Sequence record: MG592671.1 | Length of the DNA: 64,000 nt | Reading direction: 5' to 3' (one strand) | Shown here: positions 3,001-59,816 of the stretch, piece by piece | Position numbering within the stretch: position 1 is the stretch's first letter | Layout of the letters: each line of letters begins with the position of its first letter | The notes under the pieces: model-generated | What the model was told of the DNA's origin: nothing | Databases searched by the model: none | Seen by the model: only the letters and a program-made list of their open reading frames with translations | Made by a program: the position numbers and the translations under genes

Positions 3001-5899
3001 CAGCACGATCACCTAAACGTACTGTTCCGGTAACCAAATCTCCTTGCGGACCCCATAAATTATCATCACTATAGAAAGTAATCCCATTAATAGTTTCGGA
3101 TGTATACTCATTGTCCCACCAGGCTGGCTTTTGCGTGAACCCTAGCATTTCCCACGGGCGTGTATTCGGATTAACTGTATCAAAATGATCTAAGTATATC
3201 CCTCTCCAGTTACCACGAGCTTTAAGAGTTTCTCCATTTCTACCTTTGTAAAATGTGTAGTTTGTAGTTGACCAGTTCCACGATCTCCAATCTTCAGTAA
3301 CTGATGGTGACCCTAACGTAACGTGATTGTTGGCTGCCCAATTCGCGAACCCGATATTTGCAAAATTATCCCACTCATTAACCTGGTCTCCCATAGATGA
3401 TACGTATGGAGAATAATCAGTTAATCTATTAGCACTAGGTTTAACATCAAATTCTGACAATCTAGGAATGTATGCTGAATTGGTAAAATTAGCATTAATA
3501 GAGTTATAAATCATAGTCTCTAGCGCTAAAAATATAATATCACGTCTATTAGCATTCTCAGAATCATCATTAGTATCTTGGTTAAAAGACAGTGAGTATG
3601 CACCAGTGTGTGCAATATTGTAATATCTTGTATTTTTACCATCAAAACTCATACGAACTCTAATAGAAGGTTCGAATGTAGGCAACATTCCTAAGTATTG
3701 CGGTGTTGCTGGGATGTACGTGTTGTTTAATTCAGTTGTACTAGCCATACCTGAATATGCAAACGGCATATCAGTATTTTTACCAACATTAATACGACTA
3801 ATGATATCTCGTACTAGATTTTCAGCAGTATCTATTAGAACAGTTTCTCCAGAATTGTTCACTCTTGTTAGTTGACTAGCTCTATCCATCATTTCTAACG
3901 TATTCTTGAACTTATTCTTAAAACGATTGTACTCGGTCTGAACATAAATTGCTGCGTCAACAAGATTGATATTCTCATCAACATTATGAATCATTAATGG
4001 CAGTAACGAACCTTCATTTTGGATAATAAGACGACCTTTAGACATGTCCTGTGGCGTTTCCCAGAAGTTGTTAACTCCATTAGGATTGCCACTGAATCCT
4101 TCTTGGTGTTCAATGATATCCACAAAGTGGTTAAAGAACCCACTAATAGCAATTTCAGTTACTGGTTCATTTTTGGCATTACTAGCTAAATTTAATGGAA
4201 CCTCGTATGCTCCAATATTAGTATTTGGTGTCATGAAGCGGCTATATGTCTCAATAGAGAATAAATCTTCATCAAGAATAGTAAAATCGTCAACTAGAAG
4301 CTCAATTGTCGGAACATTGTTAACTGTGGAAACATTATAAAACTCAGGGTCCAATAGAAATCCACTTTGTTCAACTCTAACATCAAACGATCCATCAACT
4401 TCGTCAGGAGACATTGCTAACTCATAGCTTGATTTATAAAATGGCTTCGCTGGATCAACCTCGCCGTTTGCATCAAGCTCATACTGAACTTCAGGACGGA
4501 ACGTTTGTTTAACATATTGTTTTGAGCTATTCTCAGCTAGTTCCCAGTCAGTTCGTAGAGTGTCAGACGCAGGCACATATGCATCGTTAATTATACGGAA
4601 AAAACGAGTATTAGTTTGCTCAGTTAAAATTCCGTTATTTCTATAATAATACGAAGTGTTTGAAATTGTATTATTAAAGATAAATTGTTGGTATGAGTCT
4701 CTGCTCACACGAAGCCCTAACGTTGAATCATATGATGCAGTTGGACTAACTTGGTATTCAAACAAAGATGAACCGGCAAATGTTGACTCAGGATATACTA
4801 CATCATCAGAAAGAGATGTAAAATTGTAATCATACAGATTGAATTGTGGATACTGATTTCTAGCTTCTTTATTTTGTGAAAGTGTCCAGTTACTAGCATC
4901 CCAATGCACTGTCTTTGTACCATATACAGTTCCTTGCAAAACGTAGAAACTATCACCAGTTACTGGTGCACCAGTAGGGTGTTCTGAGTCAGTGAAATCT
5001 GGATCCAATGTAAGAGAATATAGCTCTACTCCGTTAACAACATTAGTCACAACTCGATATACACGATTATTTTCGCCAGTATTAATGATGTTTGTGAATA
5101 AAACTTTCATTCCGTTTCGTAGAAAAACACCATCAATAATGATATTATCTGATGTTGGTCGTAGCATGATATCTTCTGGTTCAATCGTATCACACAAAAT
5201 GTTTACGTCACCACGATACACTCTACCGTGATTAAGTAGCTCGATATTACGTGTATATTGAATTATAGGTCTTGATGCTGAAACAAATCTGCCAGACTCT
5301 AACTCTGCAGGTGTGATTATCAGATCACCATTTGCATCAGTCTCGTTGATATGGTACCAGTAATTGAAACGACTCCATGCGTTGCCATCAATTGCTCCTC
5401 GCTGAGAAACGATGTAATCTGTGTCATTCAAATTAGACACATTTTGAGTATCCCAGTAGTAGTTACTAAAGTTAATAATCATATCAGGGTTAATTGCAGG
5501 AGACCATGAGTAGTATCTAGCCGTTAGAAGTCTAGACTGATTCTCTTCCTCAGACCCATAGTGACCTAGGTTATCAATAAGATCTTGATATGTTAATTTA
5601 GATAGGATATTTTCTTGATCATCCATTGACACCATAGATGGAACTAATTGATAATACTCACGCTCTTTTGAGACTTCATTAATGAAGACTTTATTGTATG
5701 CAGCTTGAGAACTTCTATCGCCTATGTAGCCATCTAGGCTCTTACGTTGTTCTGGGGTGAACCAGTACTGTATAGAATCATCAAAGAACTGCTGGATTTG
5801 CTCAATATTCTGAGCCCATTGTGGCATTTTCTTAATAGCCAACTTTTTCTGGACTTCAGTAGCAACTGTTTTTGGGGAGAAATTATAATTTTCTGCCAT
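2..5899 (-). CDS. Giant virion structural protein (baseplate wedge-like), 3'-partial, about 1966 aa in window
   Basis: Not in the ORF track because it runs off the left edge. ATG at 5899 (MAENYNFSPKTVATEVQKKL...), RBS and late promoter at 5939-5946; same frame still open at the window edge (..EWDNYVASQAPLDKDAGGY). Frame was spot-checked, not read codon by codon. Lies in baseplate cluster. Confidence 0.75.
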   Translation of the reverse strand, partial: MAENYNFSPKTVATEVQKKLAIKKMPQWAQNIEQIQQFFDDSIQYWFTPEQRKSLDGYIGDRSSQAAYNKVFINEVSKEREYYQLVPSMVSMDDQENILSKLTYQDLIDNLGHYGSEEENQSRLLTARYYSWSPAINPDMIINFSNYYWDTQNVSNLNDTDYIVSQRGAIDGNAWSRFNYWYHINETDANGDLIITPAELESGRFVSASRPIIQYTRNIELLNHGRVYRGDVNILCDTIEPEDIMLRPTSDNIIIDGVFLRNGMKVLFTNIINTGENNRVYRVVTNVVNGVELYSLTLDPDFTDSEHPTGAPVTGDSFYVLQGTVYGTKTVHWDASNWTLSQNKEARNQYPQFNLYDYNFTSLSDDVVYPESTFAGSSLFEYQVSPTASYDSTLGLRVSRDSYQQFIFNNTISNTSYYYRNNGILTEQTNTRFFRIINDAYVPASDTLRTDWELAENSSKQYVKQTFRPEVQYELDANGEVDPAKPFYKSSYELAMSPDEVDGSFDVRVEQSGFLLDPEFYNVSTVNNVPTIELLVDDFTILDEDLFSIETYSRFMTPNTNIGAYEVPLNLASNAKNEPVTEIAISGFFNHFVDIIEHQEGFSGNPNGVNNFWETPQDMSKGRLIIQNEGSLLPLMIHNVDENINLVDAAIYVQTEYNRFKNKFKNTLEMMDRASQLTRVNNSGETVLIDTAENLVRDIISRINVGKNTDMPFAYSGMASTTELNNTYIPATPQYLGMLPTFEPSIRVRMSFDGKNTRYYNIAHTGAYSLSFNQDTNDDSENANRRDIIFLALETMIYNSINANFTNSAYIPRLSEFDVKPSANRLTDYSPYVSSMGDQVNEWDNFANIGFANWAANNHVTLGSPSVTEDWRSWNWSTTNYTFYKGRNGETLKARGNWRGIYLDHFDTVNPNTRPWEMLGFTQKPAWWDNEYTSETINGITFYSDDNLWGPQGDLVTGTVRLGDRAGVDTRFARSYLVMPFNETTGELLSPADDKLKLVDAAPETDLDKGLPWKFSDVSPNEYSYMNSNLASFDTALSVYRARPAEWSNYFWNSVEFTTFNFDGDIQWMKRDGSDRIILDSNELVHGEANNEVVGYQQWVSDNLRKDHKNVTTYYGDVVRSVDVRLAYRLGGFGKLENLTFVSDSFGLVSQENQHLTLNKSSVRRQETLSGVSITWDGSGYIVNGYDSLTSQFNYLTPVKTGKKSSFTSNNKSFIKYLTWNSDSSILKYNTRLKSRQDVVDFLIGYGMYLEAQGWIFEDIQTNGSVFNWETISNDFLDWSFTAPIIGDLISLSPAAKTAKFGSVFGAIDSVTQYSGGTWALLDDNSDGIYPYEIDTTRIGNVMTVRVDQDSDKRMMLLRLNIREFEHTIIFDNKTIFNDIMYSTQYGLYQDKLRVVGVITDGWNGRLEAPGFMVTDDNTLPGFEKLVDDFRHYYDNEDPTSSVQLNNLARHMIGFQTRDYLSELILNPKNQVNFYKGFVKEKGTFQSFDKILRTSKTLSTNNYRTLEEWAIKVGDYGKLGGNQKLQFIVREDELKQNPQIIAFNSADTYESDKDDTITYYGTRGLDDRWITRSSDNQEFPMVSNEYFTVDMPSAGPVTLNDADFITEDLTVISERRKAWESNNSSEAQSAWVLKDNFNNWELYSIDRFLDIQLIGIESIQLSETDTTQVASKLIFSHDHNLRSGQLFYVQGDTTPVTLTNERFFTQIEDTYDGEKWNPTVEYNEIDPNTSAATIIKHQNRTYQAKISDPAGIIPVGEEPGTDTGSEFWEDIVVTREITVNAVLTPTTFSTDSPTLVSYRVDYGSYGERNTFIEDRTVPVVNTKAFNRPVIYNQSTNKTETYLNVWDPLRGIVPGVASSEVSYTMQTDPALYNSNDSTSAAWGKDHVGKVWWDTSAALYLDYTQPVRNNDNSENEILTRKYRRENWGKLLPGSEIILKEWVRSPVQPGEWDNYVASQAPLDKDAGGY

Positions 5900-44549: not shown

Positions 44550-45245
44550 TGGATTGGGGTAAAGATTACTACGGTTTTGTTTACCTCTGGTTTGATGCAA
44601 AAAGAAGAAAATTTTGTGTAGGGTCGCATCACGGCTCTACACAAGACGGATATATCACATCAACAGGTCATATGCCTAGAGCATATAAAAAAAAGACCAC
44701 AAGATTTCAAGCGTCGAATTTTACAGTATAACACTGATATAAATGATTTCTTAGATACTCAAAAATTGGAACAAAATTGGCTAAATTTAATCAAAGATGA
44801 AGAACTAGATTTGTCTGAAAATGCTAATACTGTCCGATATTACAATAGAAAGAAAGCTGCTACTGGTTGTGGTTTTAAAGGAAAACGACATACTAAGGAA
44901 TACTGTGAGACAATGAGTGCTAATAGAACAGGTACTCAAAATCCCATGTATGGTAGAGAGCAAACGGATGACGGACTAGCTGCATTACAGAAGGGTTGGG
45001 ATTCAGAAAATAGCATCAACAAAAGAGGATGTACTGATGAAGAACTATGTAAAGCAGTATGGGGTAGAGCTAAAGGTTGGTTTTTAACTCCTAAAGGATC
45101 ATTTATTTCTTCTCAGTTAGCAGCAGAAATAAATGACGTCCCAGATTATACTATTAGAAAATGGTGTCATAATAGATACGATAAATCTAATTCTAGAACG
45201 ATACTCCCTGAAGATGAAAACTTGTGGGGTTTTAAACCTAAATAG
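44549..45245 (+). pseudogene. GIY-YIG (Seg-like) homing endonuclease split by a +1 frameshift in an A8 run
   Basis: GFVYLW...FCVGSHHGSTQDGYITS; removing one A from 44687-44694 gives AYKKRPQDFKRRILQY...LEQNWL continuing into ORF 44766-45245. Confidence 0.8.
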
Positions 45246-45304: not shown

Positions 45305-47095
45305 ATGAAACCAGCAAAGCAAGACGCAGCTAGACTAAAAATACATAACGATTATAGACAGCGTCGTCCGTTAGATAAAGGACTTGAAGCACAAACTGTT
45401 GATCTAACAGTGAATCAAAAAGATTTTGCAGTGCATTTGCCTGCGAGCATGGAGATACCATTCAATATGACTCGCTGGGGTGAGAATGAACAAACAGGCC
45501 AACGTTGTGTTGATTTTATGCAAAAAGATAACGGTGCGTTTTACTATAATTGGTCATTGTACTCCGCTGGTCATGCAAAGAATGTGCCAACCCTAATTAA
45601 GAAAGATTTGTTTATCAACAGGGATCCTGATGGTATCTTGTTTGGAGATTCTGGCGGATTCCAAGCAGCAGTTGGATCAGGAGTGCATGGAGACATGGAT
45701 TGGTCACATATCCCGTCAGTGGATGATTTATGTCAAAAAACACTAGATTGGCTAGAAGCGACATCTAACTATTCAATGATTCTCGATTTACCAACATTTG
45801 TGTTAGGTAAAAATGATAAGATTGTATCTCACGAGCAATGCCTACAGCAGACAATGTATAATATTGAATACTTTCTAGCGCATCGAGAGCCAGGTAAAAC
45901 TAACTTCTTGAATGTACTACAAGGCCTTGATGAGCACGACACTGATGAATGGTATAACGCTGTTAAGAAATTTAATAACCCTGAAACTGTACTAGATCAA
46001 GAATATTACTACATTCCATTAGCACAAATGCCAAACCCCATTGAGCCTAAAGAGGTTGCTAAGCCAGAAAAGCTCTCTGAAAATAGTTCTTTAGCTGAGG
46101 AAGAGAAATTTAAAGAAGATGAGAAAAAGTACAAAAAGTATCGAGTCGAGTTGAATTTATATAAAAAGGCCTTAAAACGCAAACCGGAAACTTTAGCTAG
46201 TATTGTTGATATTGACGGTTTTAAGTACATTAAGGCAAAATCACCATGGGTAAAAAAGTTCGGTTCTAACACAAAGCTAGGAGACCGAGCACTTGAAGGA
46301 TGGGCAATGTCAGGACACATGGTACATAATGTTGATTTAGCGTTACGTCAATTCTGCATTTTATTGCGTGACGGGAACATCGATGATCGACAACACTGGG
46401 TACACATGCTAGGATTAGCAACTATGAAAGCTGCTGTAACGCTAACAGCGATACAGCGTAAGATTCGAACTCTGCCTGGTTGTGAAAACTTCGTCATTAG
46501 TTATGATAGTTCAAGCGCATCACAATTTATGCAGTTTGGCAAGATGATTATCGGAGCATACTCTGATCCAGTATCTAAGGTGGCTACATTCACGCTATGG
46601 AAGCCACCAGCAGACTATGGTTCGTGCGGCTCTAAGCAGTTAATTAAAGATTCATTAGCATACCATGATGCTAATCAGCCTAAGGAAAAGGAACTTAGGA
46701 CTGATTTAAAGAAAAATGAGATACGATTTGAAACTTACGTGATGAATAATATCAGTGTTGGTGATTTATGCTATAAGTTACCCACAGAGCCAGGAAATCG
46801 CCCGTGGGATACAACATCTAATAGTTTTGTTTACTGTCAAAATGTAGAAGCTATTATTCGTAGTTTTCAATGGATTAACGAAATGGCAGATGCTGATAGG
46901 ACAGATGTAGTAGAGCCGGAACTACTTGATTTTAAAAACAGAATCATACATGAGATTTTTTCTGATCCAGATCCAGTACAGGCAGTGACGCACTACCAAA
47001 CTATAATTAGGCCACTGTTCGCAAAAGAGATTATACCTAATAAGTGTAGTTCGCATCACAATGTTCTAAATAACAATGATTTATTTGGGTGGTAA
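45305..47095 (+). CDS. dpdA: tRNA-guanine-transglycosylase-like DNA-modifying enzyme (DpdA, probably DpdA2-type)
   Basis: TGT-fold motifs FGDSGGFQ, MILDLP, NVLQG, GWAMSG, HMLG, SYDSSS; no TGT CxCxxC zinc site seen; clustered with que genes. Confidence 0.8.
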   Translation: MKPAKQDAARLKIHNDYRQRRPLDKGLEAQTVDLTVNQKDFAVHLPASMEIPFNMTRWGENEQTGQRCVDFMQKDNGAFYYNWSLYSAGHAKNVPTLIKKDLFINRDPDGILFGDSGGFQAAVGSGVHGDMDWSHIPSVDDLCQKTLDWLEATSNYSMILDLPTFVLGKNDKIVSHEQCLQQTMYNIEYFLAHREPGKTNFLNVLQGLDEHDTDEWYNAVKKFNNPETVLDQEYYYIPLAQMPNPIEPKEVAKPEKLSENSSLAEEEKFKEDEKKYKKYRVELNLYKKALKRKPETLASIVDIDGFKYIKAKSPWVKKFGSNTKLGDRALEGWAMSGHMVHNVDLALRQFCILLRDGNIDDRQHWVHMLGLATMKAAVTLTAIQRKIRTLPGCENFVISYDSSSASQFMQFGKMIIGAYSDPVSKVATFTLWKPPADYGSCGSKQLIKDSLAYHDANQPKEKELRTDLKKNEIRFETYVMNNISVGDLCYKLPTEPGNRPWDTTSNSFVYCQNVEAIIRSFQWINEMADADRTDVVEPELLDFKNRIIHEIFSDPDPVQAVTHYQTIIRPLFAKEIIPNKCSSHHNVLNNNDLFGW

Positions 47096-47122: not shown

Positions 47123-48235
47123 ATGTTTAACGAATTATTTGATTTCAATGATAGATATCGTAGCACTACATCTGATGAATTAGCAGACCAGATAGATAAG
47201 TATTTGACAACAACTAATAATCCTCCACTTAAGAAATACCAAGTTATGAGTACTGATTATGGTGCTGAATGGGAAATTGCAGACATTGACCGCAGTTGTA
47301 CGTTACCAGAAGGGCTAACTTGGGATGGCAAAGATCAAACAGTAATGAATACTAATGGCATTGCAACTGACCCGCACCTTAACTCTGAAATTAGAACATG
47401 GAATTATGGTGGTGAAATGAACACCAAGCCATGTAACACTATTGATGAAATAGTTGAGTTGTTTAAAACACTACTACGCAATCAACCAGAATGTACTGTT
47501 AATAACTCGTGTAACTTGCATAATCACTATAGGATTCCAGGATTGGACGTGGATGGATTGAAACGCGTCGTATCCTATTATTATGTCTATCGAGATGAAA
47601 TGATTGAAGTATCAGACTATATCCCTACACCTAGCGAGCAAGGGTATAACGCATCAAATTGCTCAACGAGCGATTTAAAGATAGTTGAAGACCGCTACAA
47701 ACATCACACTAAGCCATTAGGTGGGTCGAGACACGGAGATCTTCCAGAGTTTGTTCTGCTGAATAAGCTATTAGCAGAAGATGAAGAGTCATTCCACCAA
47801 GCAAGTGTTATTACACAAAGTGGGGTTGATACTTTAGATGCTAATGCTGCTCGAGCTAGTATTAACACGTGGCAAATGCGTAAATCTCGATCAAAAGAGC
47901 ATGCTGACATTGAATATGAGAAACGACCGTTTGCTGAATCTGGGACTATTGAAATGCGAATGCATCATGGAACAACTGATGTTGAAAAATACAAAAATAG
48001 TATTATTTGGGACATTAACATCTTAAACGCAGCCTTGAACACTGGTGAAACCCCACGTGAGATATTTGATCGTTTATGGGAAGGAAAATCCCAAAAAGAC
48101 GTTCTCCCAACATACATCCCTGTTGATTTAGAAAAATATAAAATCTTCAAGATGACTAAAAATGATGGATCAAACGCACGTAGGTCACTAGTAAAGGCCA
48201 CAATTAATGATCTCAAAAACACAGGCAAAATTTAA
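47123..48235 (+). CDS. Putative amidoligase (COOH-NH2 ligase, glutamine-synthetase-like fold)
   Basis: DYGAEWE, GGEMNTKP, NNSCNLHNHYRIP, SINT, TIEMRMHHGT match the GxExE / E..P / SCxxHxH / TxExR..GT pattern. Confidence 0.75.
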   Translation: MFNELFDFNDRYRSTTSDELADQIDKYLTTTNNPPLKKYQVMSTDYGAEWEIADIDRSCTLPEGLTWDGKDQTVMNTNGIATDPHLNSEIRTWNYGGEMNTKPCNTIDEIVELFKTLLRNQPECTVNNSCNLHNHYRIPGLDVDGLKRVVSYYYVYRDEMIEVSDYIPTPSEQGYNASNCSTSDLKIVEDRYKHHTKPLGGSRHGDLPEFVLLNKLLAEDEESFHQASVITQSGVDTLDANAARASINTWQMRKSRSKEHADIEYEKRPFAESGTIEMRMHHGTTDVEKYKNSIIWDINILNAALNTGETPREIFDRLWEGKSQKDVLPTYIPVDLEKYKIFKMTKNDGSNARRSLVKATINDLKNTGKI

Positions 48236-48297: not shown

Positions 48298-49197
48298 ATG
48301 AGTATCGATAAAACTAAAGAACAGGCTAGCAAATTTCTTGGCAATGATGTTGAATATAAAGATCAATACGACAAGAGTTTATTAGTACCTGTTGAAAGAG
48401 TGCATAATCGCACTAAGTACGCTATCGAAGAGAATAACCTGCCGTTTGTAGGGTTTGACACTTGGAATGCTTTTGAAGTATCGTTCCAGTTAAAGAACGG
48501 GTTACCAGTCGCAGCAGTAGCTAAGATTAGCTATCCTTGTAACACCCACAGTATTATTGAATCAAAATCCATTAAGTTATATTTGAACAGTTATAACATG
48601 ACTAAGTTCGACATGACTAAAGGCGAAGCGTTGACGTTTGTAGGAGATCAAATTGCCAAAGATCTAAGTGAGATTTTAGGCGGCGATGTAGATTGTACTT
48701 TACACGTTAATGAGTTTGACGGCCCAGAGCAAGTTTTTGACACAAGTGAATTTACTGATATTGAGCAATTAGTTGACGGTGAGCACATTATTTTTGATCA
48801 ATATAATGAAACACCTGATATTCTAAAGAAAAAGCGCGGGAAAGGCGGATACATTGCAGTCTCTACTAGTTTACTTCGCTCTAATTGTCGTATTACTAAT
48901 CAACCAGATTGGGGTGATGCATATATTATTATGGATGGAGATTCTCTTCCAACTATGGAATCATTACTCCAGTATATTGTGTCTTTCCGTAAGGAATCGC
49001 ACTTCCATGAAGAATGTTGCGAGATGTTATTTAAACGACTTATGGACAAGTTTAATCCTGATGAGCTGATGGTAACTTGCTTATACACACGCCGTGGTGG
49101 CATAGACATTAATCCATCAAGAGCTACACACGAGTATTTGCTTCCGGAATTGCTTGCTGATACAGAGATTTTAACAGCTAAGACTATGCGTCAGTAA
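48298..49197 (+). CDS. queF: preQ0 (7-cyano-7-deazaguanine) reductase, bimodular gammaproteobacterial type
   Basis: IIESKSIKLYLNS, LRSNCRITNQPDWG, HFHEECCE, RRGGIDINP. Confidence 0.95.
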   Translation: MSIDKTKEQASKFLGNDVEYKDQYDKSLLVPVERVHNRTKYAIEENNLPFVGFDTWNAFEVSFQLKNGLPVAAVAKISYPCNTHSIIESKSIKLYLNSYNMTKFDMTKGEALTFVGDQIAKDLSEILGGDVDCTLHVNEFDGPEQVFDTSEFTDIEQLVDGEHIIFDQYNETPDILKKKRGKGGYIAVSTSLLRSNCRITNQPDWGDAYIIMDGDSLPTMESLLQYIVSFRKESHFHEECCEMLFKRLMDKFNPDELMVTCLYTRRGGIDINPSRATHEYLLPELLADTEILTAKTMRQ

Positions 49198-49243: not shown

Positions 49244-49873
49244 ATGTTTAACCTAGAGTACAATATAAAAACATTAAGTTGTTTTTCTTTGTTCCATATA
49301 TTCATTATTGCATTGTCAAACTATGCAGTGCAATTCCCGATTAATTTGTTTGGGTTCCATTCAACATTAGGCGCTTTCACCTTCCCGTTTATCTTTTTAG
49401 CAACTGATCTCACTGTTCGTGTATATGGCGCACAAGCTGCTCGCAAGATAATTACTATAGGCATGCTTCCTGCACTTGTTGTGTCATATATAGTCAGTAT
49501 TGTATTTTTTAATGGCGACTATCAAGGACTTCAGGGATTGTACGAATTTAACACGTTTGTATTCCGTATAGCTCTTGCTAGTTTTGCAGCTTATACAATT
49601 GGACAGGTTTTAGACATTGTAGTATTCAACAAATTACGTGACTTGAAAACATGGTGGGTCGCGCCAGCTTGTTCTAATGTGTTTGGTGCTGCCATTGATA
49701 CGATTGTGTTCTTTAGCATTGCATTTTACATGAGTTCAGATGCATTTATGGCAGCTAACTGGGTAGAAATTGGCATTGTTGACTATTTCATAAAAATTGC
49801 GGTTGCTTTGTTAATGTTCCTTCCGTTATACGGAGTGCTACTAACAGCGATATCGAAGCGTATTCACAAGTAA
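49244..49873 (+). CDS. yhhQ: preQ0/preQ1 transporter
   Basis: Multi-TM; FPFIFLATDLTVRVYG, RIALASFAAY..GQVLDI.VFNKLR, WWVAP..S..FG..IDT. Confidence 0.92.
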   Translation: MFNLEYNIKTLSCFSLFHIFIIALSNYAVQFPINLFGFHSTLGAFTFPFIFLATDLTVRVYGAQAARKIITIGMLPALVVSYIVSIVFFNGDYQGLQGLYEFNTFVFRIALASFAAYTIGQVLDIVVFNKLRDLKTWWVAPACSNVFGAAIDTIVFFSIAFYMSSDAFMAANWVEIGIVDYFIKIAVALLMFLPLYGVLLTAISKRIHK

Positions 49874-49933
49874 TGTTATAATTAAAGTGTAGCCTAGCTA
49901 CACTTTAATAATCTGCGTAATAGCAGCCGGGAC

Positions 49934-49967
49934 AGCGGACCGTAACCCCGCTATATAAATTCAGGAG
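49934..49967 (+). ncRNA. preQ1-I riboswitch-like element (variant) overlapping the queC RBS
   Basis: Stem AGCGG/CCGCT, 9-nt loop ACCGTAACC, A-rich tail ATATAAATTCAGGAG ending in the RBS. Confidence 0.5.
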
Positions 49968-49974
49968 AAAATAA

Positions 49975-50736
49975 ATGAACTTAAAAGAAGCACTTGCTAT
50001 ATTACCAGAAACAAAAAATAATGTTGTATCTGTATTGTCTGGTGGTTTAGACAGCACTATCATGACTTATGTACTTGTCCATAAGTATGGAGCTAGTAAC
50101 GTCTTTGCACTATCATATAACTATGGGCAAAAGCAATCACTTGAGCTAAAGAAAGCTGAAGAAACATGTAACGCTTTGGGAATCCAGCATAAAATCATAG
50201 ATATTGGTTTTTTGGGCGACATTGTATCACCCGTTTGCGCAAACATTGCCACATCTGATGTAGCTATGCCAACCATCCATGAAGTATTAGGTGACCCTCA
50301 ACCACCATCATACGTTCCATACCGAAACTTAATTCTCAATAGTACAGCAATGGCATTTGCTGAAACTAACAACGCATCGTATATTTTTACAGGGTTGCAA
50401 GTTCATGATGAGTACGGCTATTGGGATACATCGCAAAAATTTGTTGATTCATTAAATGCAGTGTCATCATTAAATCGTATGCATAAAATTGAAGTTCGCG
50501 CTCCATTTTCAATGCTATCTAAATATGAGGAAATTAATATTGCTACTGAGTTAGGTAATGTGGATTTTACTAAAACATTAACATGTTATGATCCAAACAA
50601 CTTAGGACATTCATGTGGAGTTTGTCCTAGTTGCTCTGAGCGTATTAAAAACTTTATGCTATCTGGGATTGCTGATCCAATCAATTACTCGATTGATATT
50701 GATTGGGACAGTGGTATCAAACAACATAAAAAATAA
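49975..50736 (+). CDS. queC: 7-cyano-7-deazaguanine synthase
   Basis: VLSGGLDST, SYVPYRNLI, TCY...CGVCPSCSER. Confidence 0.95.
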   Translation: MNLKEALAILPETKNNVVSVLSGGLDSTIMTYVLVHKYGASNVFALSYNYGQKQSLELKKAEETCNALGIQHKIIDIGFLGDIVSPVCANIATSDVAMPTIHEVLGDPQPPSYVPYRNLILNSTAMAFAETNNASYIFTGLQVHDEYGYWDTSQKFVDSLNAVSSLNRMHKIEVRAPFSMLSKYEEINIATELGNVDFTKTLTCYDPNNLGHSCGVCPSCSERIKNFMLSGIADPINYSIDIDWDSGIKQHKK

Positions 50737-50768: not shown

Positions 50769-51383
50769 ATGTGTGGTATATTTGCTTCTAAATCAAAAGA
50801 AAAATTTATTGAGTTAATGGAACTGAATGCGTATAGAGGAACGTTTTCTCATAGTATTGCTTGTGTTGATTTAACAACATCCAGCATTGTAGATCTTATT
50901 AAAAATGTTGGTCCGTTAGATGTCAACTCCATTCCTAATATTCCTAATGTTTACTATATAGGCCATGTGCAGGCACCGACAACGCAGGATGGGATGTGTG
51001 ACGCAAATATACATCCTGCGGTTGAAAACAACACATATATGTGGCATAATGGCATCATAAAAGAGAAATGTATTAGCGAGCTACAAAAAGAAACAGGTAT
51101 AGATAGTAATTGGGATACGCTATTACTACTGTCTTATATCAATAATAATCACAGTTTATCAGAAGTTGATGGAACGTTTGCATGTGTTGTAATCGACAAA
51201 AGTATTAAAATTTTCAGGAATGCAATATCCCCAATGTTTATTGATGATGAGCTCAACCTAAGCTCAGTTAGATTCAAAAACGCAAAACCACTAACACCTA
51301 ATGTTATACACAATATTATTGATAATACCATTGTTGAAACGGATAATCACTTCGTAACTAAAAACAACCCATATAATCTATAA
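50769..51383 (+). CDS. Class II (Ntn) glutamine amidotransferase, stand-alone
   Basis: N-terminal MCGI, NAYRG, GHVQAPT, WHNGII, WDT, DGTFA. Confidence 0.85.
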   Translation: MCGIFASKSKEKFIELMELNAYRGTFSHSIACVDLTTSSIVDLIKNVGPLDVNSIPNIPNVYYIGHVQAPTTQDGMCDANIHPAVENNTYMWHNGIIKEKCISELQKETGIDSNWDTLLLLSYINNNHSLSEVDGTFACVVIDKSIKIFRNAISPMFIDDELNLSSVRFKNAKPLTPNVIHNIIDNTIVETDNHFVTKNNPYNL

Positions 51384-51392
51384 TATCAAGCT

Positions 51393-51425
51393 ATGCGGTA
51401 AGTAATCCCGCATTAAAAAAACTAC
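51393..51425 (+). ncRNA. preQ1-I riboswitch-like aptamer upstream of folE
   Basis: Stem ATGCGG/CCGCAT, loop TAAGTAATC (U first, C last), tail TAAAAAAACTAC as in class I preQ1 aptamers. Confidence 0.65.
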
Positions 51426-51464
51426 ATCCAAAACATATTTTGGATCAAACAAGGAAAAATAAAA

Positions 51465-52331
51465 ATGTGCGATAATCATAAAAGTCAAGATGTACAATTA
51501 ATGGAAAATATTCTCAACGCGCTAGATGGTATCAATCTATCCGCAGCAGTGCAAGACGTATCGTCGTTAACTCCAGGAAATCTAGAAGACGAAAGATTAT
51601 TCATGGAAAAAATGATTAGCATTCTCGATAATGAATCTAAAAAAGCAACTCATGAACGAATTCGAGAGCGCATTCTAGAAGCTGATGCTAAGTTCCATGC
51701 TAATTCTAATATTGCAGAATTTATTAATGATGGTGAAATTGATGAGCTTATTGATGAATGTACTGTAGCATTTGAGAAAGTATTAGATTGTTTGATTATT
51801 GATAGAGAAAATGACCCTAACTCGATGGATACTCCACGACGTTTAGCTAAGATGTACATCTTAGAAACAATGAGCGGTCGATTTACTCCAGCACCTAAAG
51901 TAACAGCATTCCCTAACACGCATACAAACCGATCAGCCGGCTTTAGCGGCCTGTTAGTGGTTAAGACTGAAATCATCTCAATGTGTTCTCATCACCACCA
52001 GCCAGTAAAAGGCACAGTATACACTGGCATCATTCCAGGCGAAACAGTTTTAGGTTTATCAAAATATAGTCGAATTGCGCAGCACTTAGCAAAAAGAGGC
52101 ACGTTACAAGAAGAACTAGCAGAGGATATTGCTCAGAAAGTTATGGAAGAAACTGATTCTCCATCAGTTGCTGTCTATATCGAAGCCACTCATGGTTGTG
52201 TGACACACCGCGGTGTTATGGCGCACGACTCCACTACTCAAACAACAGTAGTACATGGTGAATTTATGTCAGATGGAACTCTTAGAAAGGAATTCCACGA
52301 CAATATCATGTATCAAAAATTAAACAAATAA
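51465..52331 (+). CDS. folE: GTP cyclohydrolase I
   Basis: DTPRRLAKMY, SMCSHHHQP, GLSKYSRI, LQEEL, HGCVTHRGV. Confidence 0.95.
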   Translation: MCDNHKSQDVQLMENILNALDGINLSAAVQDVSSLTPGNLEDERLFMEKMISILDNESKKATHERIRERILEADAKFHANSNIAEFINDGEIDELIDECTVAFEKVLDCLIIDRENDPNSMDTPRRLAKMYILETMSGRFTPAPKVTAFPNTHTNRSAGFSGLLVVKTEIISMCSHHHQPVKGTVYTGIIPGETVLGLSKYSRIAQHLAKRGTLQEELAEDIAQKVMEETDSPSVAVYIEATHGCVTHRGVMAHDSTTQTTVVHGEFMSDGTLRKEFHDNIMYQKLNK

Positions 52332-52334
52332 TTC

Positions 52335-52360
52335 AAAAGCAGCCGAAGCTGCTTTTCTTT
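52335..52360 (+). terminator. Terminator after folE
   Basis: AAAAGCAGC-CGAA-GCTGCTTTTCTTT. Confidence 0.8.
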
Positions 52361-53488: not shown

Positions 53489-53794
53489 ATGGGAGTAAGT
53501 TTTTACTCATGTAGTGCTTGTAATGAAGCAGTATATGAAGAATATATTAGATCATGTGAATGTTGTCAAGAAGAGATATGCTCAGATTGTGCAGGGTCAA
53601 GTAGTCAATATGGTGATGATGATCTTATGAATGATGATTATGAGTGGCTAGAACATAATTGCCCGTATTGTAATGGCACTGTGATAACTGACGCTGAGAT
53701 TATCAACTACTTATTTAATCACCAAATTGATCGAGATCGAGAAGAAGTAATGGAAGAATTCCATATCCATAGAACATTGGAGAAAGGTAAATGA
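53489..53794 (+). CDS. Cys-rich (zinc-binding) small protein
   Basis: CSAC, CECC, CSDC, CPYC. Confidence 0.65.
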   Translation: MGVSFYSCSACNEAVYEEYIRSCECCQEEICSDCAGSSSQYGDDDLMNDDYEWLEHNCPYCNGTVITDAEIINYLFNHQIDRDREEVMEEFHIHRTLEKGK

Positions 53795-54690
53795 TTAGGG
53801 AAAAACAATATCGCTATAGTGAGATTTTCGGAGAAACCTTTCAAGGAGAGGGGAATCACACCGGGAAGAATACTTTGTGGCTAAGATGGTTTGGATGTAA
53901 CAAAACCTGCTATCTCTTTGGTCAAGATAAAGAGAATCCCGTTCCTAAAAAAGAAATGTATTACGAAACTATTGATATCACTAATATAACTGATATTCAA
54001 CAGCTACCTATACAAAATATGGGATGTGACAGCTATCATAGTTGGCACCCACGATACCGTCATTTAGCACACAAAGACACAGCCAAAGACTTAGCGCAAA
54101 AGTTAATAGATCTTAATAAGAACGAACATAACCCAGAAGGGCTTTTTATTCATCCTAAATCAGGACAAGATATCCATTTATGCTTTACTGGCGGTGAATC
54201 AATGATGGCTCAAGATGGCATTATTGATGTGCTAAACGCGTTGATTTCCGTTGGTAATTATCCTAAAAATGTAACTATTGAATCTAATGGAACAGTTAAT
54301 CTAAGATCTCATCAAGACTGGACTAACATGTTTAATCAAGACATTACTTTATTTTGGAGCATTTCACCTAAATTAGAATCAGTTAGCGGAGAAGCTTGGG
54401 ATAAATCAATATGCCCGGATACGCTATACGGTTACAAGCAGATTGTTGATAACGGACAGTTGAAATTTGTTTGTGATAATTCAGATGAATCTTGGGAAGA
54501 GATTGAAAAAGCTATTCTTGAATACCAGCAACGTGGGGTTACTTGGCCAATCTGGATTATGCCAGAGGGCGCAGAGCAGTCAGCACAATCAAGACATGAT
54601 GCAGATATTGCAGTAGAAGCAGTCAAGCGCGGATATTACTTTGCATCAAGAGTACATGCTACTGTATTTGGTGCGGTCGCTGGTAAGTAA
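53791..54690 (+). CDS. queE: 7-carboxy-7-deazaguanine synthase (radical SAM)
   Basis: ETFQGEG, RWFGCNKTC...CDSYHSW, CFTGGES, TIESNG, ISPKL, RVHA. Confidence 0.92.
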   Translation: MIREKQYRYSEIFGETFQGEGNHTGKNTLWLRWFGCNKTCYLFGQDKENPVPKKEMYYETIDITNITDIQQLPIQNMGCDSYHSWHPRYRHLAHKDTAKDLAQKLIDLNKNEHNPEGLFIHPKSGQDIHLCFTGGESMMAQDGIIDVLNALISVGNYPKNVTIESNGTVNLRSHQDWTNMFNQDITLFWSISPKLESVSGEAWDKSICPDTLYGYKQIVDNGQLKFVCDNSDESWEEIEKAILEYQQRGVTWPIWIMPEGAEQSAQSRHDADIAVEAVKRGYYFASRVHATVFGAVAGK

Positions 54691-59024: not shown

Positions 59025-59153
59025 GTGTGATACACTCCTATATTAAATGTTATAATGTAATATAACAAAAAATAAAAGCAAGAATGAAATAGTCAAGATA
59101 GAGAACCCACAGCCAAACGCATGTGGCAATATTTAGAATTAGGAGATAAAAGG

Positions 59154-59816
59154 ATGTTTGAGATTAGTAAGCAGATTTCACTCTGTTATGGGCACCGAGT
59201 CTGGTCACAAGACTTAGAAGAGGAATTTTGTGCATCTGGAGACACTGCCTGTAAGTGCAAGCACCAACATGGTCATCAAGGTGAGATTCAAGTCTTTCTA
59301 GAAGCTTCTGATGTAAATCATCAAGGCTTTGTGACAGATTTCAAACATCTAGGCTGGCTTAGAGATTTTGTAGATAATTATTTTGATCACAAAATGATTT
59401 ATGACCTAAATGACCCAGGTCTAGGCTTCTTGTGTAATGGGATAGTTCGTATGGGCTTTGCTCAAGATTACAAGATCAATAATGAGATAGTTCGTTTTGA
59501 AAAACCAGAAGCATTTGAACTATACAGTCAATGGGACAATTTGATTATTCCGATGAAAGAGATTACAGTTGAAGGAAAAACAGCTGGATATGTGCTTGAT
59601 TTGGAAGGTTTCGAGGATCAGTTAGAATCGTCACACTATGAGATTCTAGAAGGTTACTTCTTTGTTAATTTTGTTCCTACTTCTGAAAATCTTTGTAAGT
59701 TCATTCACGGGCTGGCACAAGAAAAGATGAAAAAGATTGGCGTTACTGTATCAAAAGTCCTGTGGCAAGAAACTCCTAAATCACAAGCAACTTTCATCGC
59801 CAAACCATTGAAATAA
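59154..59816 (+). CDS. queD: 6-carboxy-5,6,7,8-tetrahydropterin synthase
   Basis: CYGHR, CKHQHGH, TDFKHL, DHKMI, PTSENL, ETP; start moved to ATG 59154 (RBS AGGAG/AAGG). Confidence 0.9.
   Translation: MFEISKQISLCYGHRVWSQDLEEEFCASGDTACKCKHQHGHQGEIQVFLEASDVNHQGFVTDFKHLGWLRDFVDNYFDHKMIYDLNDPGLGFLCNGIVRMGFAQDYKINNEIVRFEKPEAFELYSQWDNLIIPMKEITVEGKTAGYVLDLEGFEDQLESSHYEILEGYFFVNFVPTSENLCKFIHGLAQEKMKKIGVTVSKVLWQETPKSQATFIAKPLK

Follow-up and report, generated by a model that had tools for sequence, protein, structure and literature searches.

A conserved preQ1-I-like hairpin with an A-rich tail in the folE and queC leaders of a Vibrio phage and its relatives

We analysed a stretch of 64,000 nucleotides (nt), hereafter the window, from the 349-kb genome of Vibrio phage 2.275.O._10N.286.54.E11 (MG592671.1, host V. 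cyclitrophicus), in which an RNA element at 51393-51425 precedes folE, the gene of GTP cyclohydrolase I. The element is real: it is conserved, structured and covarying, is limited to the leaders of two que genes, folE and queC, and is similar to the preQ1-I riboswitch. It is best explained as a member of a phage-specific family of small RNAs, each composed of a hairpin and an A-rich tail, in a clade of marine T4-like phages. That it acts as a divergent preQ1-I-like sensor of preQ1 or preQ0 and damps folE translation is a reading we hold tentatively, at slightly less than even confidence. As the element resembles the smallest known preQ1 riboswitch but fails the model of that family, it is a promising, unproven candidate.

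Results

Architecture of the folE leader

The folE leader is an 81-nt gap between an amidotransferase-like open reading frame (ORF), whose stop codon ends at 51383, and the folE start at 51465. Its parts are given in Table 1. A preliminary description of this DNA, made from the letters alone, had read a hairpin, a tail, a second hairpin and a ribosome-binding site in front of folE, and the sequence reads exactly so. The minimum-energy structure of the leader predicted by RNAfold consists of both hairpins, which alone have energies of -6.4 and -5.6 kcal/mol. The whole 97-nt leader is mildly more stable than its shuffles (z = -1.8), and the tail 9-mer AAAAAACTA is not rare in the window (5 observed vs 2.2 expected). 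Hairpins are also borne by many other intergenic regions of the window.

We described the element loosely, as a stem of 5 base pairs (bp) with a U...C loop and an AAAAC tail that is complementary to the loop over at least 3 bp. Among the matches listed, this descriptor hits about 9 unrelated sites on both strands of 2.39 Mb, a rate at which about 0.001 sites are expected in the ca. 0.45 kb of que-gene leaders of the window. The descriptor also matches the giant-virus metagenome-assembled contigs L152 (~3046-3077) and L165 (~1637-1668), on the minus strand in reverse-complement coordinates, where a 5-bp hairpin with a U...C loop precedes an AAAAC tail and loop and tail are complementary over 5 bp.

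Conservation and covariation in related phages

Relatives were located in ENA and Logan assemblies by protein search for FolE with the same N-terminal extension as that of the window, and L317/L318 were added by a single metagenome scan. The contigs have the same gene neighbourhood, namely DNA polymerase, queF, YhhQ, queC, folE, queD and Cpn10. Twelve related contigs of uncultured phages have homologous elements in their folE leaders (L083, L205, L206, L210, L211, L212, L213-215, L298, L299, L317/318 and L345). The FolE proteins of these relatives are 53-71% identical to that of the window, and with FolE identities of 53-82% the relatives are not assembly duplicates of one another.

The stem P1 covaries. 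In alignment A3, four of its five pairs are changed on both sides and 91.7% of the cells are paired, and the covariation score is reached by none of 500 shuffles. When the partner is slid by 1-3 columns as a control, pairing falls to 36-55%. The closing G-C pair of P1 is invariant in all eight sequences, while the remaining pairs covary. Invariant in the folE-type members (alignments A3 and A6) are the closing G-C, the U next to it, which is column 6 of A3, an internal GU and the C before the P1 3' strand, which is column 15 of A3, and the tail AAAAC is conserved in all members. Loops are near-identical inside subgroups, the stems of which differ by compensatory changes. Specifically, the window, L083 and L210 have one nearly identical loop despite different stems, and L205, L211, L298 and L318 have another type of the form U-GGCGU-xxC-C. 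The base before the invariant loop-end C is itself C in L205, L206, L211, L298 and L318. L211 and L212 encode an identical FolE protein behind different leaders (L211 2825-2858; L212 887-919). P1 of L212 and L345 (the latter on the minus strand, ~540-575) contains an internal A.G mismatch, with an outer pair of G.U vs A-U.

The folE copy is not universal in the clade, as other hairpins precede folE in L082, the contig with the closest FolE relative, and L084 and L207 have no intergenic space there. Outside the clade, the descriptor places no element near folE in 160 IMG/VR loci with distant folE homologues, among the matches listed. Exact-pattern scans of IMG/VR (loop plus tail, queC leader, and GGCGU-type loop) yielded almost exclusively chance or coding matches; L345 is the only true member from them, and a match in L161 was rejected for lying inside a 595-aa ORF. 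Loci retrieved by way of the upstream amidotransferase-like protein were set aside, since folE is not downstream there.

A sister element in the queC leader

Two covariance models were built. Model R1 is based on the folE leaders of seven relatives, with the window left out and P1 as the sole structure, and model R2 on the queC leaders of six relatives. The top R1 site in the 64-kb window is 51394-51425 (22.7 bits, E ~0.006), followed by a site of 13.9 bits. In the window as in five relatives, the weak secondary matches of R1 all lie just 5' of queC. The sites of R2 in the window are exactly two, 49934-49967 (30.0 bits, E 2.4e-6) and 51394-51423 (20.3 bits, E 0.001), and the third-best score is 10.9 bits; the E-values of both models are rough, coming from a shortened calibration. 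As R2 retrieves both sites, the queC-leader and folE-leader elements are therefore paralogues that mark two genes of one pathway. According to both models, the element is limited to these two leaders and does not occur before other genes with the same promoter. R1 finds nothing convincing near folE in the 160 IMG/VR folE loci, among the matches listed, and nothing convincing in Streptococcus phage Dp-1, Vibrio phage nt-1, vB_VcorM_GR11A and phage NCTB. The family is specific to this phage clade.

The queC leaders share one order of parts: a TGTTATAAT promoter motif, two hairpins, an element-type hairpin, an A/U-rich tail and a Shine-Dalgarno sequence (SD). The second of the two hairpins, followed by CCG, is kept in L205, L206, L210, L213, L298 and L317/318. 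Neither the sister element nor the lack of a promoter of the usual type in front of folE was part of the preliminary description.

Loop-tail pairing in the family

In the folE leaders of L205, L211, L212, L298, L299 and L206 the loop can pair with the tail over 4-6 bp, and three different base-paired versions of this helix are found across subgroups. In the queC leaders the loop pairs with the tail segment just 5' of the SD, again in several versions; column 12:34 of alignment A5, for instance, is CG, AU or UA. Where P1 is weak (L212, L345 and L299), the loop-tail helix is the predicted main helix. In alignment A6, which was fitted with a covariance model, the tail of the window is in a different register from that of the main subgroup.

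Comparison with preQ1-I riboswitches and other RNA families

In preQ1-I riboswitches the minor groove of P1 accommodates the A-rich L3 tail, which has a conserved C near its 3' end. The pocket of these riboswitches has the G-C top of P1 as its floor, a C as the specificity base and the tail as a further part (PMC11625349). Three types are distinguished by the bases flanking P1. In type I, UU follows the 5' strand of P1, UC precedes its 3' strand and the tail C is conserved; type II has AC in front of the 3' strand; type III combines UU with AC, and its loop is rich in pyrimidines and base-pairs with the SD (PMC11625349). The invariant positions of our element are the ones to which the roles of floor, specificity base and tail are assigned (PMC11625349). 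Like preQ1-I (RF00522), the element is ca. 33 nt long and has a P1 of 5-6 bp closed by a conserved G-C, a loop with U as its first base and C as its last, next to the P1 3' strand, a tail that is rich in A and contains a conserved C, and a possible H-type loop-tail pseudoknot. The UC of the window (51406-51407) is that of subtype I, and at the sequence level its tail has seven A and then C (51415-51422). The genomic position is alike as well, in the leader of a queuosine/preQ1 pathway gene.

A permissive scan of the 191 nt at 51330-51520 against 4227 families returned only Clostridium-PBP, KRAS_3UTR, freshwater-2, PreQ1 and CrcZ, so that PreQ1 is the only riboswitch family returned in the folE leader. 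Riboswitches associated with folE are known, the THF-II or folE motif being an example; no other such family is among the matches of the permissive scan in this leader. The RF00522 alignment covers model positions 6-38 of 45 with a 3-nt deletion in the loop and a well-matched tail. Its E-value divided by 4227 families gives ~1e-3 for the single hypothesis, a figure that is rough at low scores.

A second similarity concerns freshwater-2 (RF02980), an uncharacterised candidate for a cis-regulatory RNA. Its three-hairpin model aligns end to end with the queC leader, in the order of hairpin, hairpin, a GCGG...CCGC hairpin with a loop ending in C, SD and AUG. However, the scores (15.8 bits in the folE leader and 22.3 bits in the queC leader) fall far short of the 49.9-bit gathering threshold, and the SD-AUG stretch contributes the larger part of them.

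Evidence weighing against a preQ1 sensor, and a precedent for steric attenuation

A number of results count against reading the element as a preQ1 or preQ0 sensor, in addition to the rough calibration of R1 and R2. Nowhere in the window does an Rfam family attain its gathering score. The preliminary description had named a search with the Rfam PreQ1 model as a check, and RF00522 matches 51394-51424 with only 12.5 bits vs a gathering score of 39 (E 3.6 in the permissive scan). Of the two things it had coupled as damaging, a low score and no conservation, the low score was found, and the lack of conservation was not, given 12 contigs with a covarying P1. The leaders of the tested relatives (L213, L211, L210, L083, L205 and L206) have no PreQ1 match with E <= 10 in 111-nt or 2-kb searches. 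The preQ1-II model (RF01054) gives 14.6 bits (E 4.1) at 49872-49977 in the queC leader vs a gathering score of 47, and nothing in the folE leader. At gathering thresholds, Rfam finds no family in eight other phage que loci, including those of the four phages named above; canonical preQ1 riboswitches were thus not found in this small survey. The relatives are few and phylogenetically clustered, and the alignment boundaries were picked after the motif had been seen.

The signature positions deviate, too. After the P1 5' strand the window has UA and most relatives have UG, instead of the UU of types I and III. The largest subgroup of relatives has CC before the P1 3' strand, which fits no subtype, and most queC-type loops start with A rather than U. 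Further differences are that the register of the relatives has the tail C itself paired, that the loop of the window is 3 nt shorter than in the model with a marginal pseudoknot, that the SD of the window is outside P2 and behind another hairpin with no terminator, and that the element is carried by a lytic phage. The preliminary description had considered all preQ1-I features to be matched. This is right for the G-C-closed P1, the U...C loop and the A-rich tail with its C, and too strong for the rest: the loop is short, its second base is A, the pseudoknot is marginal and a platform is missing. As it fails the RF00522 model and several signature positions, we file the element as a variant, not a member, of preQ1-I; it may work in the manner of that class and descend from it.

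The pseudoknot is the weakest part of the window copy. Pairing of loop AG with tail CU, as put forward in the preliminary description, is possible, but the loop-tail pairing comprises only 3 bp in two mutually exclusive registers (Table 1) and is equalled by loop shuffles (p = 0.73, in a per-sequence test that is too weak to prove a pseudoknot). L210 and L213 have only 2 bp, and the queC element of the window is without the 6 nt that form the 3' strand of the pseudoknot in the relatives (R2 alignment). Taken together with the pairing in the relatives, a pseudoknot is plausible for the family and unproven for this phage.

The leader also offers little in the way of a switch. A distance of 25 nt separates the SD from the tail; by prediction the SD is 95-96% unpaired, and neither a competing fold within 3 kcal/mol nor sequestration of the SD is predicted. 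A scan of 51384-51464 finds no terminator, neither hairpin being followed by a T run; having no U tract behind it, the hairpin at 51426-51445 is not a terminator. With an open SD, no terminator and no alternative fold, no expression platform is visible in the window, which bears out the preliminary description, where the missing U tract had been noted and the platform called unclear. In the relatives the SD is mostly open too, often displayed in a hairpin loop, and a TGTTATAAT-type promoter lies 6-15 nt ahead of the element. In L299 the tail strand runs straight into the SD, and in L211 and L212 the two are 5-6 nt apart. A preQ1-I expression platform has SD bases in or next to P2, or else a terminator that overlaps the aptamer; L299 conforms to this and L211 and L212 nearly do. 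In the window and in L210 a hairpin occupies the gap between tail and SD, and that of the window ends 5 nt before the SD.

A precedent for action on an open SD exists. The pseudoknot of the type I preQ1-I riboswitch of Carnobacterium antarcticum attenuates translation sterically, without pairing to the SD, and attenuation persists when the pseudoknot is moved up to 10 nt from the SD by unstructured spacers (PMC10018353). Steric attenuation is the only type of mechanism that is compatible with the open SD here, and L211, L212 and L299 fall within the 10-nt range. The window differs in that its 25-nt gap is filled by a stable hairpin.

Gene cluster and transcription units

The phage is T4-like, encoding a Gp20 portal, a Gp23 capsid and baseplate proteins, and no close relative was found in the public phage collection. 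The genes around the element cover the whole route from GTP to preQ1 and include a precursor transporter (Table 1). Pfam and PHROG searches of window ORFs of at least 150 aa found no TGT/DpdA domain. The preliminary description had spoken of a dpdA phage and its DNA modification; DNA modification is therefore a supposition drawn from the gene set.

Two conserved uncharacterised proteins are encoded directly 5' of queF, of 596 aa (45305-47095) and 370 aa (47123-48235). Neither has a match in PHROG or to a PDB sequence, and the 370-aa protein has a borderline match to Amidoligase_2. ORFs of similar size are in the same place in the relatives, and the two proteins are candidates for the missing base-exchange or tailoring enzymes. 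FolE of the clade has a poorly conserved N-terminal extension of ~60-150 residues before the catalytic domain (alignment A1), which corresponds to 51465-51680 (residues 1-~70) in the window, is specific to the clade and is missing from the 229-aa marine homologues. In several relatives, homing-endonuclease-like ORFs of the GIY-YIG/NUMOD3 kind are inserted between queC and folE on the opposite strand; the window instead has a NUMOD3 ORF (44766-45245) near the DNA polymerase gene. Anti-defence families are found near folE in relatives, namely Acb1 (L082 6968-7462) and Tad3 (L083 1971-2537; L206 9004-9588).

The motif TGTTATAAT, of the extended -10 type, has 10 copies in the window, all on the plus strand and each shortly 5' of a plus-strand gene. 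It is found before queF, queC, the queE unit and queD, and none is found before folE by the motif scan of the window. In relatives it is also present 5' of que leaders. TGTTATAAT is probably the early or middle promoter consensus of the phage. Before folE there is a pair of TATAAT hexamers (Table 1), at which the promoter scan reports no sigma-70-type site. Directly 3' of folE, a GC-rich hairpin is the probable end of the queC-gat-folE transcription unit, gat being the amidotransferase-like gene. Given the missing TGTTATAAT before folE and this hairpin after it, folE is most likely the last gene of a queC-gat-folE transcript, in which the element would be intercistronic.

Table 1. Positions of the element, its sister and the surrounding features in the window; coordinates preceded by a handle refer to a related contig
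Feature	Position	Strand	Basis and remarks
P1, 5' strand	51393-51398	+	Sequence, RNAfold, covariation in A3
Loop, 9 nt; U first, internal GUA, UC last	51399-51407	+	Sequence; final C (51407) is the candidate ligand-pairing base
P1, 3' strand (6-bp stem)	51408-51413	+	Sequence, covariation
A-rich tail (L3); one U, seven A, CUAC	51414-51425	+	Sequence; RF00522 alignment to its AAAAAACUA part
Candidate pseudoknot registers	51401-51403 with 51421-51423, or 51402-51404 with 51423-51425	+	Complementarity
Second hairpin, perfect, 8 bp, 4-nt loop, directly after the tail	51426-51445	+	Sequence, RNAfold
SD of folE, AAGGA, 9 nt 5' of ATG (51465)	51451-51455	+	Sequence
Sister element in queC leader; 4-5 bp P1 closed by G-C, 9-nt loop ending CC, A/U-rich tail, then SD	49934-49967	+	R2
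TGTTATAAT, extended -10 type promoter motif of queC leader	49874-49882	+	Motif scan
Two conserved hairpins of queC leader	49884-49906, 49913-49926	+	Leader alignment, hairpin scan
queF	48298-49197	+	Pfam search; leader without element
YhhQ/Vut_1 precursor transporter	49244-49873	+	Pfam search; leader without element
queC	49975-50736	+	Pfam PF06508, 1.6e-50
gat, glutamine-amidotransferase-like (Ntn) protein, between queC and folE	50769-51383	+	Weak Pfam GATase_6; phrog_12378, 7.7e-40
folE, GTP cyclohydrolase I	51465-52331	+	Pfam PF01227 (GTP_cyclohydroI), 4.9e-38; record annotation; alignment A1
QueE-like radical SAM enzyme	53791-54690	+	phrog_2076, 1.1e-37
queD (PTPS family)	59121-59816	+	Pfam PF01242, 3.1e-22
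TGTTATAAT copies	14241, 19048, 37092, 40329, 43756, 48261, 49874, 53426, 59048, 62951	+	Motif scan of window
Two overlapping TATAAT hexamers; possible weak -10, no TG extension, no -35	51372-51384	+	Sequence; inside and just past the end of the upstream ORF
GC-rich 9-bp hairpin between A and T runs, directly 3' of folE	52335-52356		Terminator and hairpin scans
Homing-endonuclease-like ORFs of relatives	L205 4884-5618, L206 4825-5553, L213 3797-4528, L298 780-1571	-	GIY-YIG/NUMOD3 matches

Discussion

The element could work as follows. The ligand sensed would be preQ1 or preQ0, to which both regulated enzymes lead, and would be held by the G-C top of P1, the first U and the last C of the loop, and the last A of the tail. 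Once bound, it would fix the tail to the loop in an H-type pseudoknot. The locked pseudoknot might then, as pure conjecture, stack on the adjoining hairpin at 51426-51445 and lower the loading of 30S subunits on folE, so that a build-up of product would slow the first, GTP-consuming step. We infer that a ligand binds, which ligand this is, in which direction regulation runs and that the mechanism is steric. The wider proposal, an undescribed phage-borne preQ1-I subtype or derived class that stands in two copies per genome of marine T4-like phages, before queC and before folE, senses the phage's pool of 7-deazaguanine precursors and tunes the supply for base modification, is possible, and we lean somewhat against it.

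A phage or host protein might instead co-regulate queC and folE by binding the element as a translational operator, which we regard as unlikely and still worth serious attention. T4 and its kin use small leader structures in this way: gene 32 has a leader pseudoknot and gene 43 a hairpin operator, each for autogenous control by its own protein product. The present phage is T4-like, and its element is likewise a short hairpin by the ribosome-binding site of what would be an early or middle gene. The loop is more conserved in sequence than the stem, the riboswitch model fails, and the pseudoknot is dispensable in the queC leader of the window, in L210 and in L213; the unexplained FolE extension of 60-150 aa also counts in favour. 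In contrast to the T4 operators, the same element stands before two enzymes of one pathway and mimics a metabolite aptamer, and the product of this very pathway is the ligand of the aptamer that it resembles. The positions of the preQ1-I pocket are the invariant ones here, the loop-tail pairing of the relatives covaries, which a simple hairpin operator does not need, and no candidate RNA-binding protein was identified. Rather unlikely, too, is an element that senses nothing, such as a stabiliser of a 5' end or an intercistronic region, an RNase processing site or a pause signal, with the tail as an AT-rich spacer. Beginning 6-15 nt after the promoter, the element of the relatives would be the 5'-terminal hairpin of the mRNA; the hairpins in other intergenic regions of the window and the lack of a thermodynamically predicted switch point the same way. 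However, the folE copy of the window is inside a transcript and not 5'-terminal, a generic stabiliser requires no conserved loop, U...C frame or AAAAC tail, and the models match only the queC and folE leaders and not other genes with the same promoter.

An aptamer of the same fold might also be genuine and bind another guanine-like ligand, for example guanine, 7-carboxy-7-deazaguanine or the final modified base of the phage. The candidate for the specificity base is a C, as it is with ligands that present a guanine face, and the loop bases next to it are unlike those of every described preQ1-I subtype. The additional amidotransferase-like gene that separates queC from folE suggests that the end product is not the standard one. 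As the regulated genes are common to all 7-deazaguanine routes, the context cannot discriminate the ligand, and with no positive evidence for any of the alternatives we consider a different ligand improbable. Chance resemblance, that is, an ordinary intergenic hairpin and a run of A in an AT-rich genome, would account for the low Rfam score, the commonness of AAAAAACTA in the window and the modest z-score of the leader, but not for compensatory stem changes across 12 other contigs, detection by models built without the window and occurrence before two genes of one pathway; it is very improbable.

In the openly accessible literature, we found no work that combines DpdA with a riboswitch, and searching for preQ1 riboswitches together with phages and deazaguanine gave only unrelated work. 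The preliminary description, too, was aware of no riboswitch control described for phage deazaguanine DNA modification. If the preQ1-I-like reading is true, the element would be the first metabolite-sensing RNA tied to 7-deazaguanine synthesis of phages, one that uses neither SD pairing nor a terminator, and it would explain why standard Rfam annotation is blank in these phages. Models R1 and R2 are a practical route to further members. If a protein operator is the answer instead, the element points to a regulator devoted to 7-deazaguanine synthesis in phages. Should the element bind preQ1 or preQ0, the smallest riboswitch fold known would gain a fourth sequence subtype, one whose loop and pairing register are unusual, and the element would be a natural aptamer that acts at a distance from an open ribosome-binding site. 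Lytic phages would then have riboswitch-type feedback of their own over an auxiliary, GTP-draining pathway.

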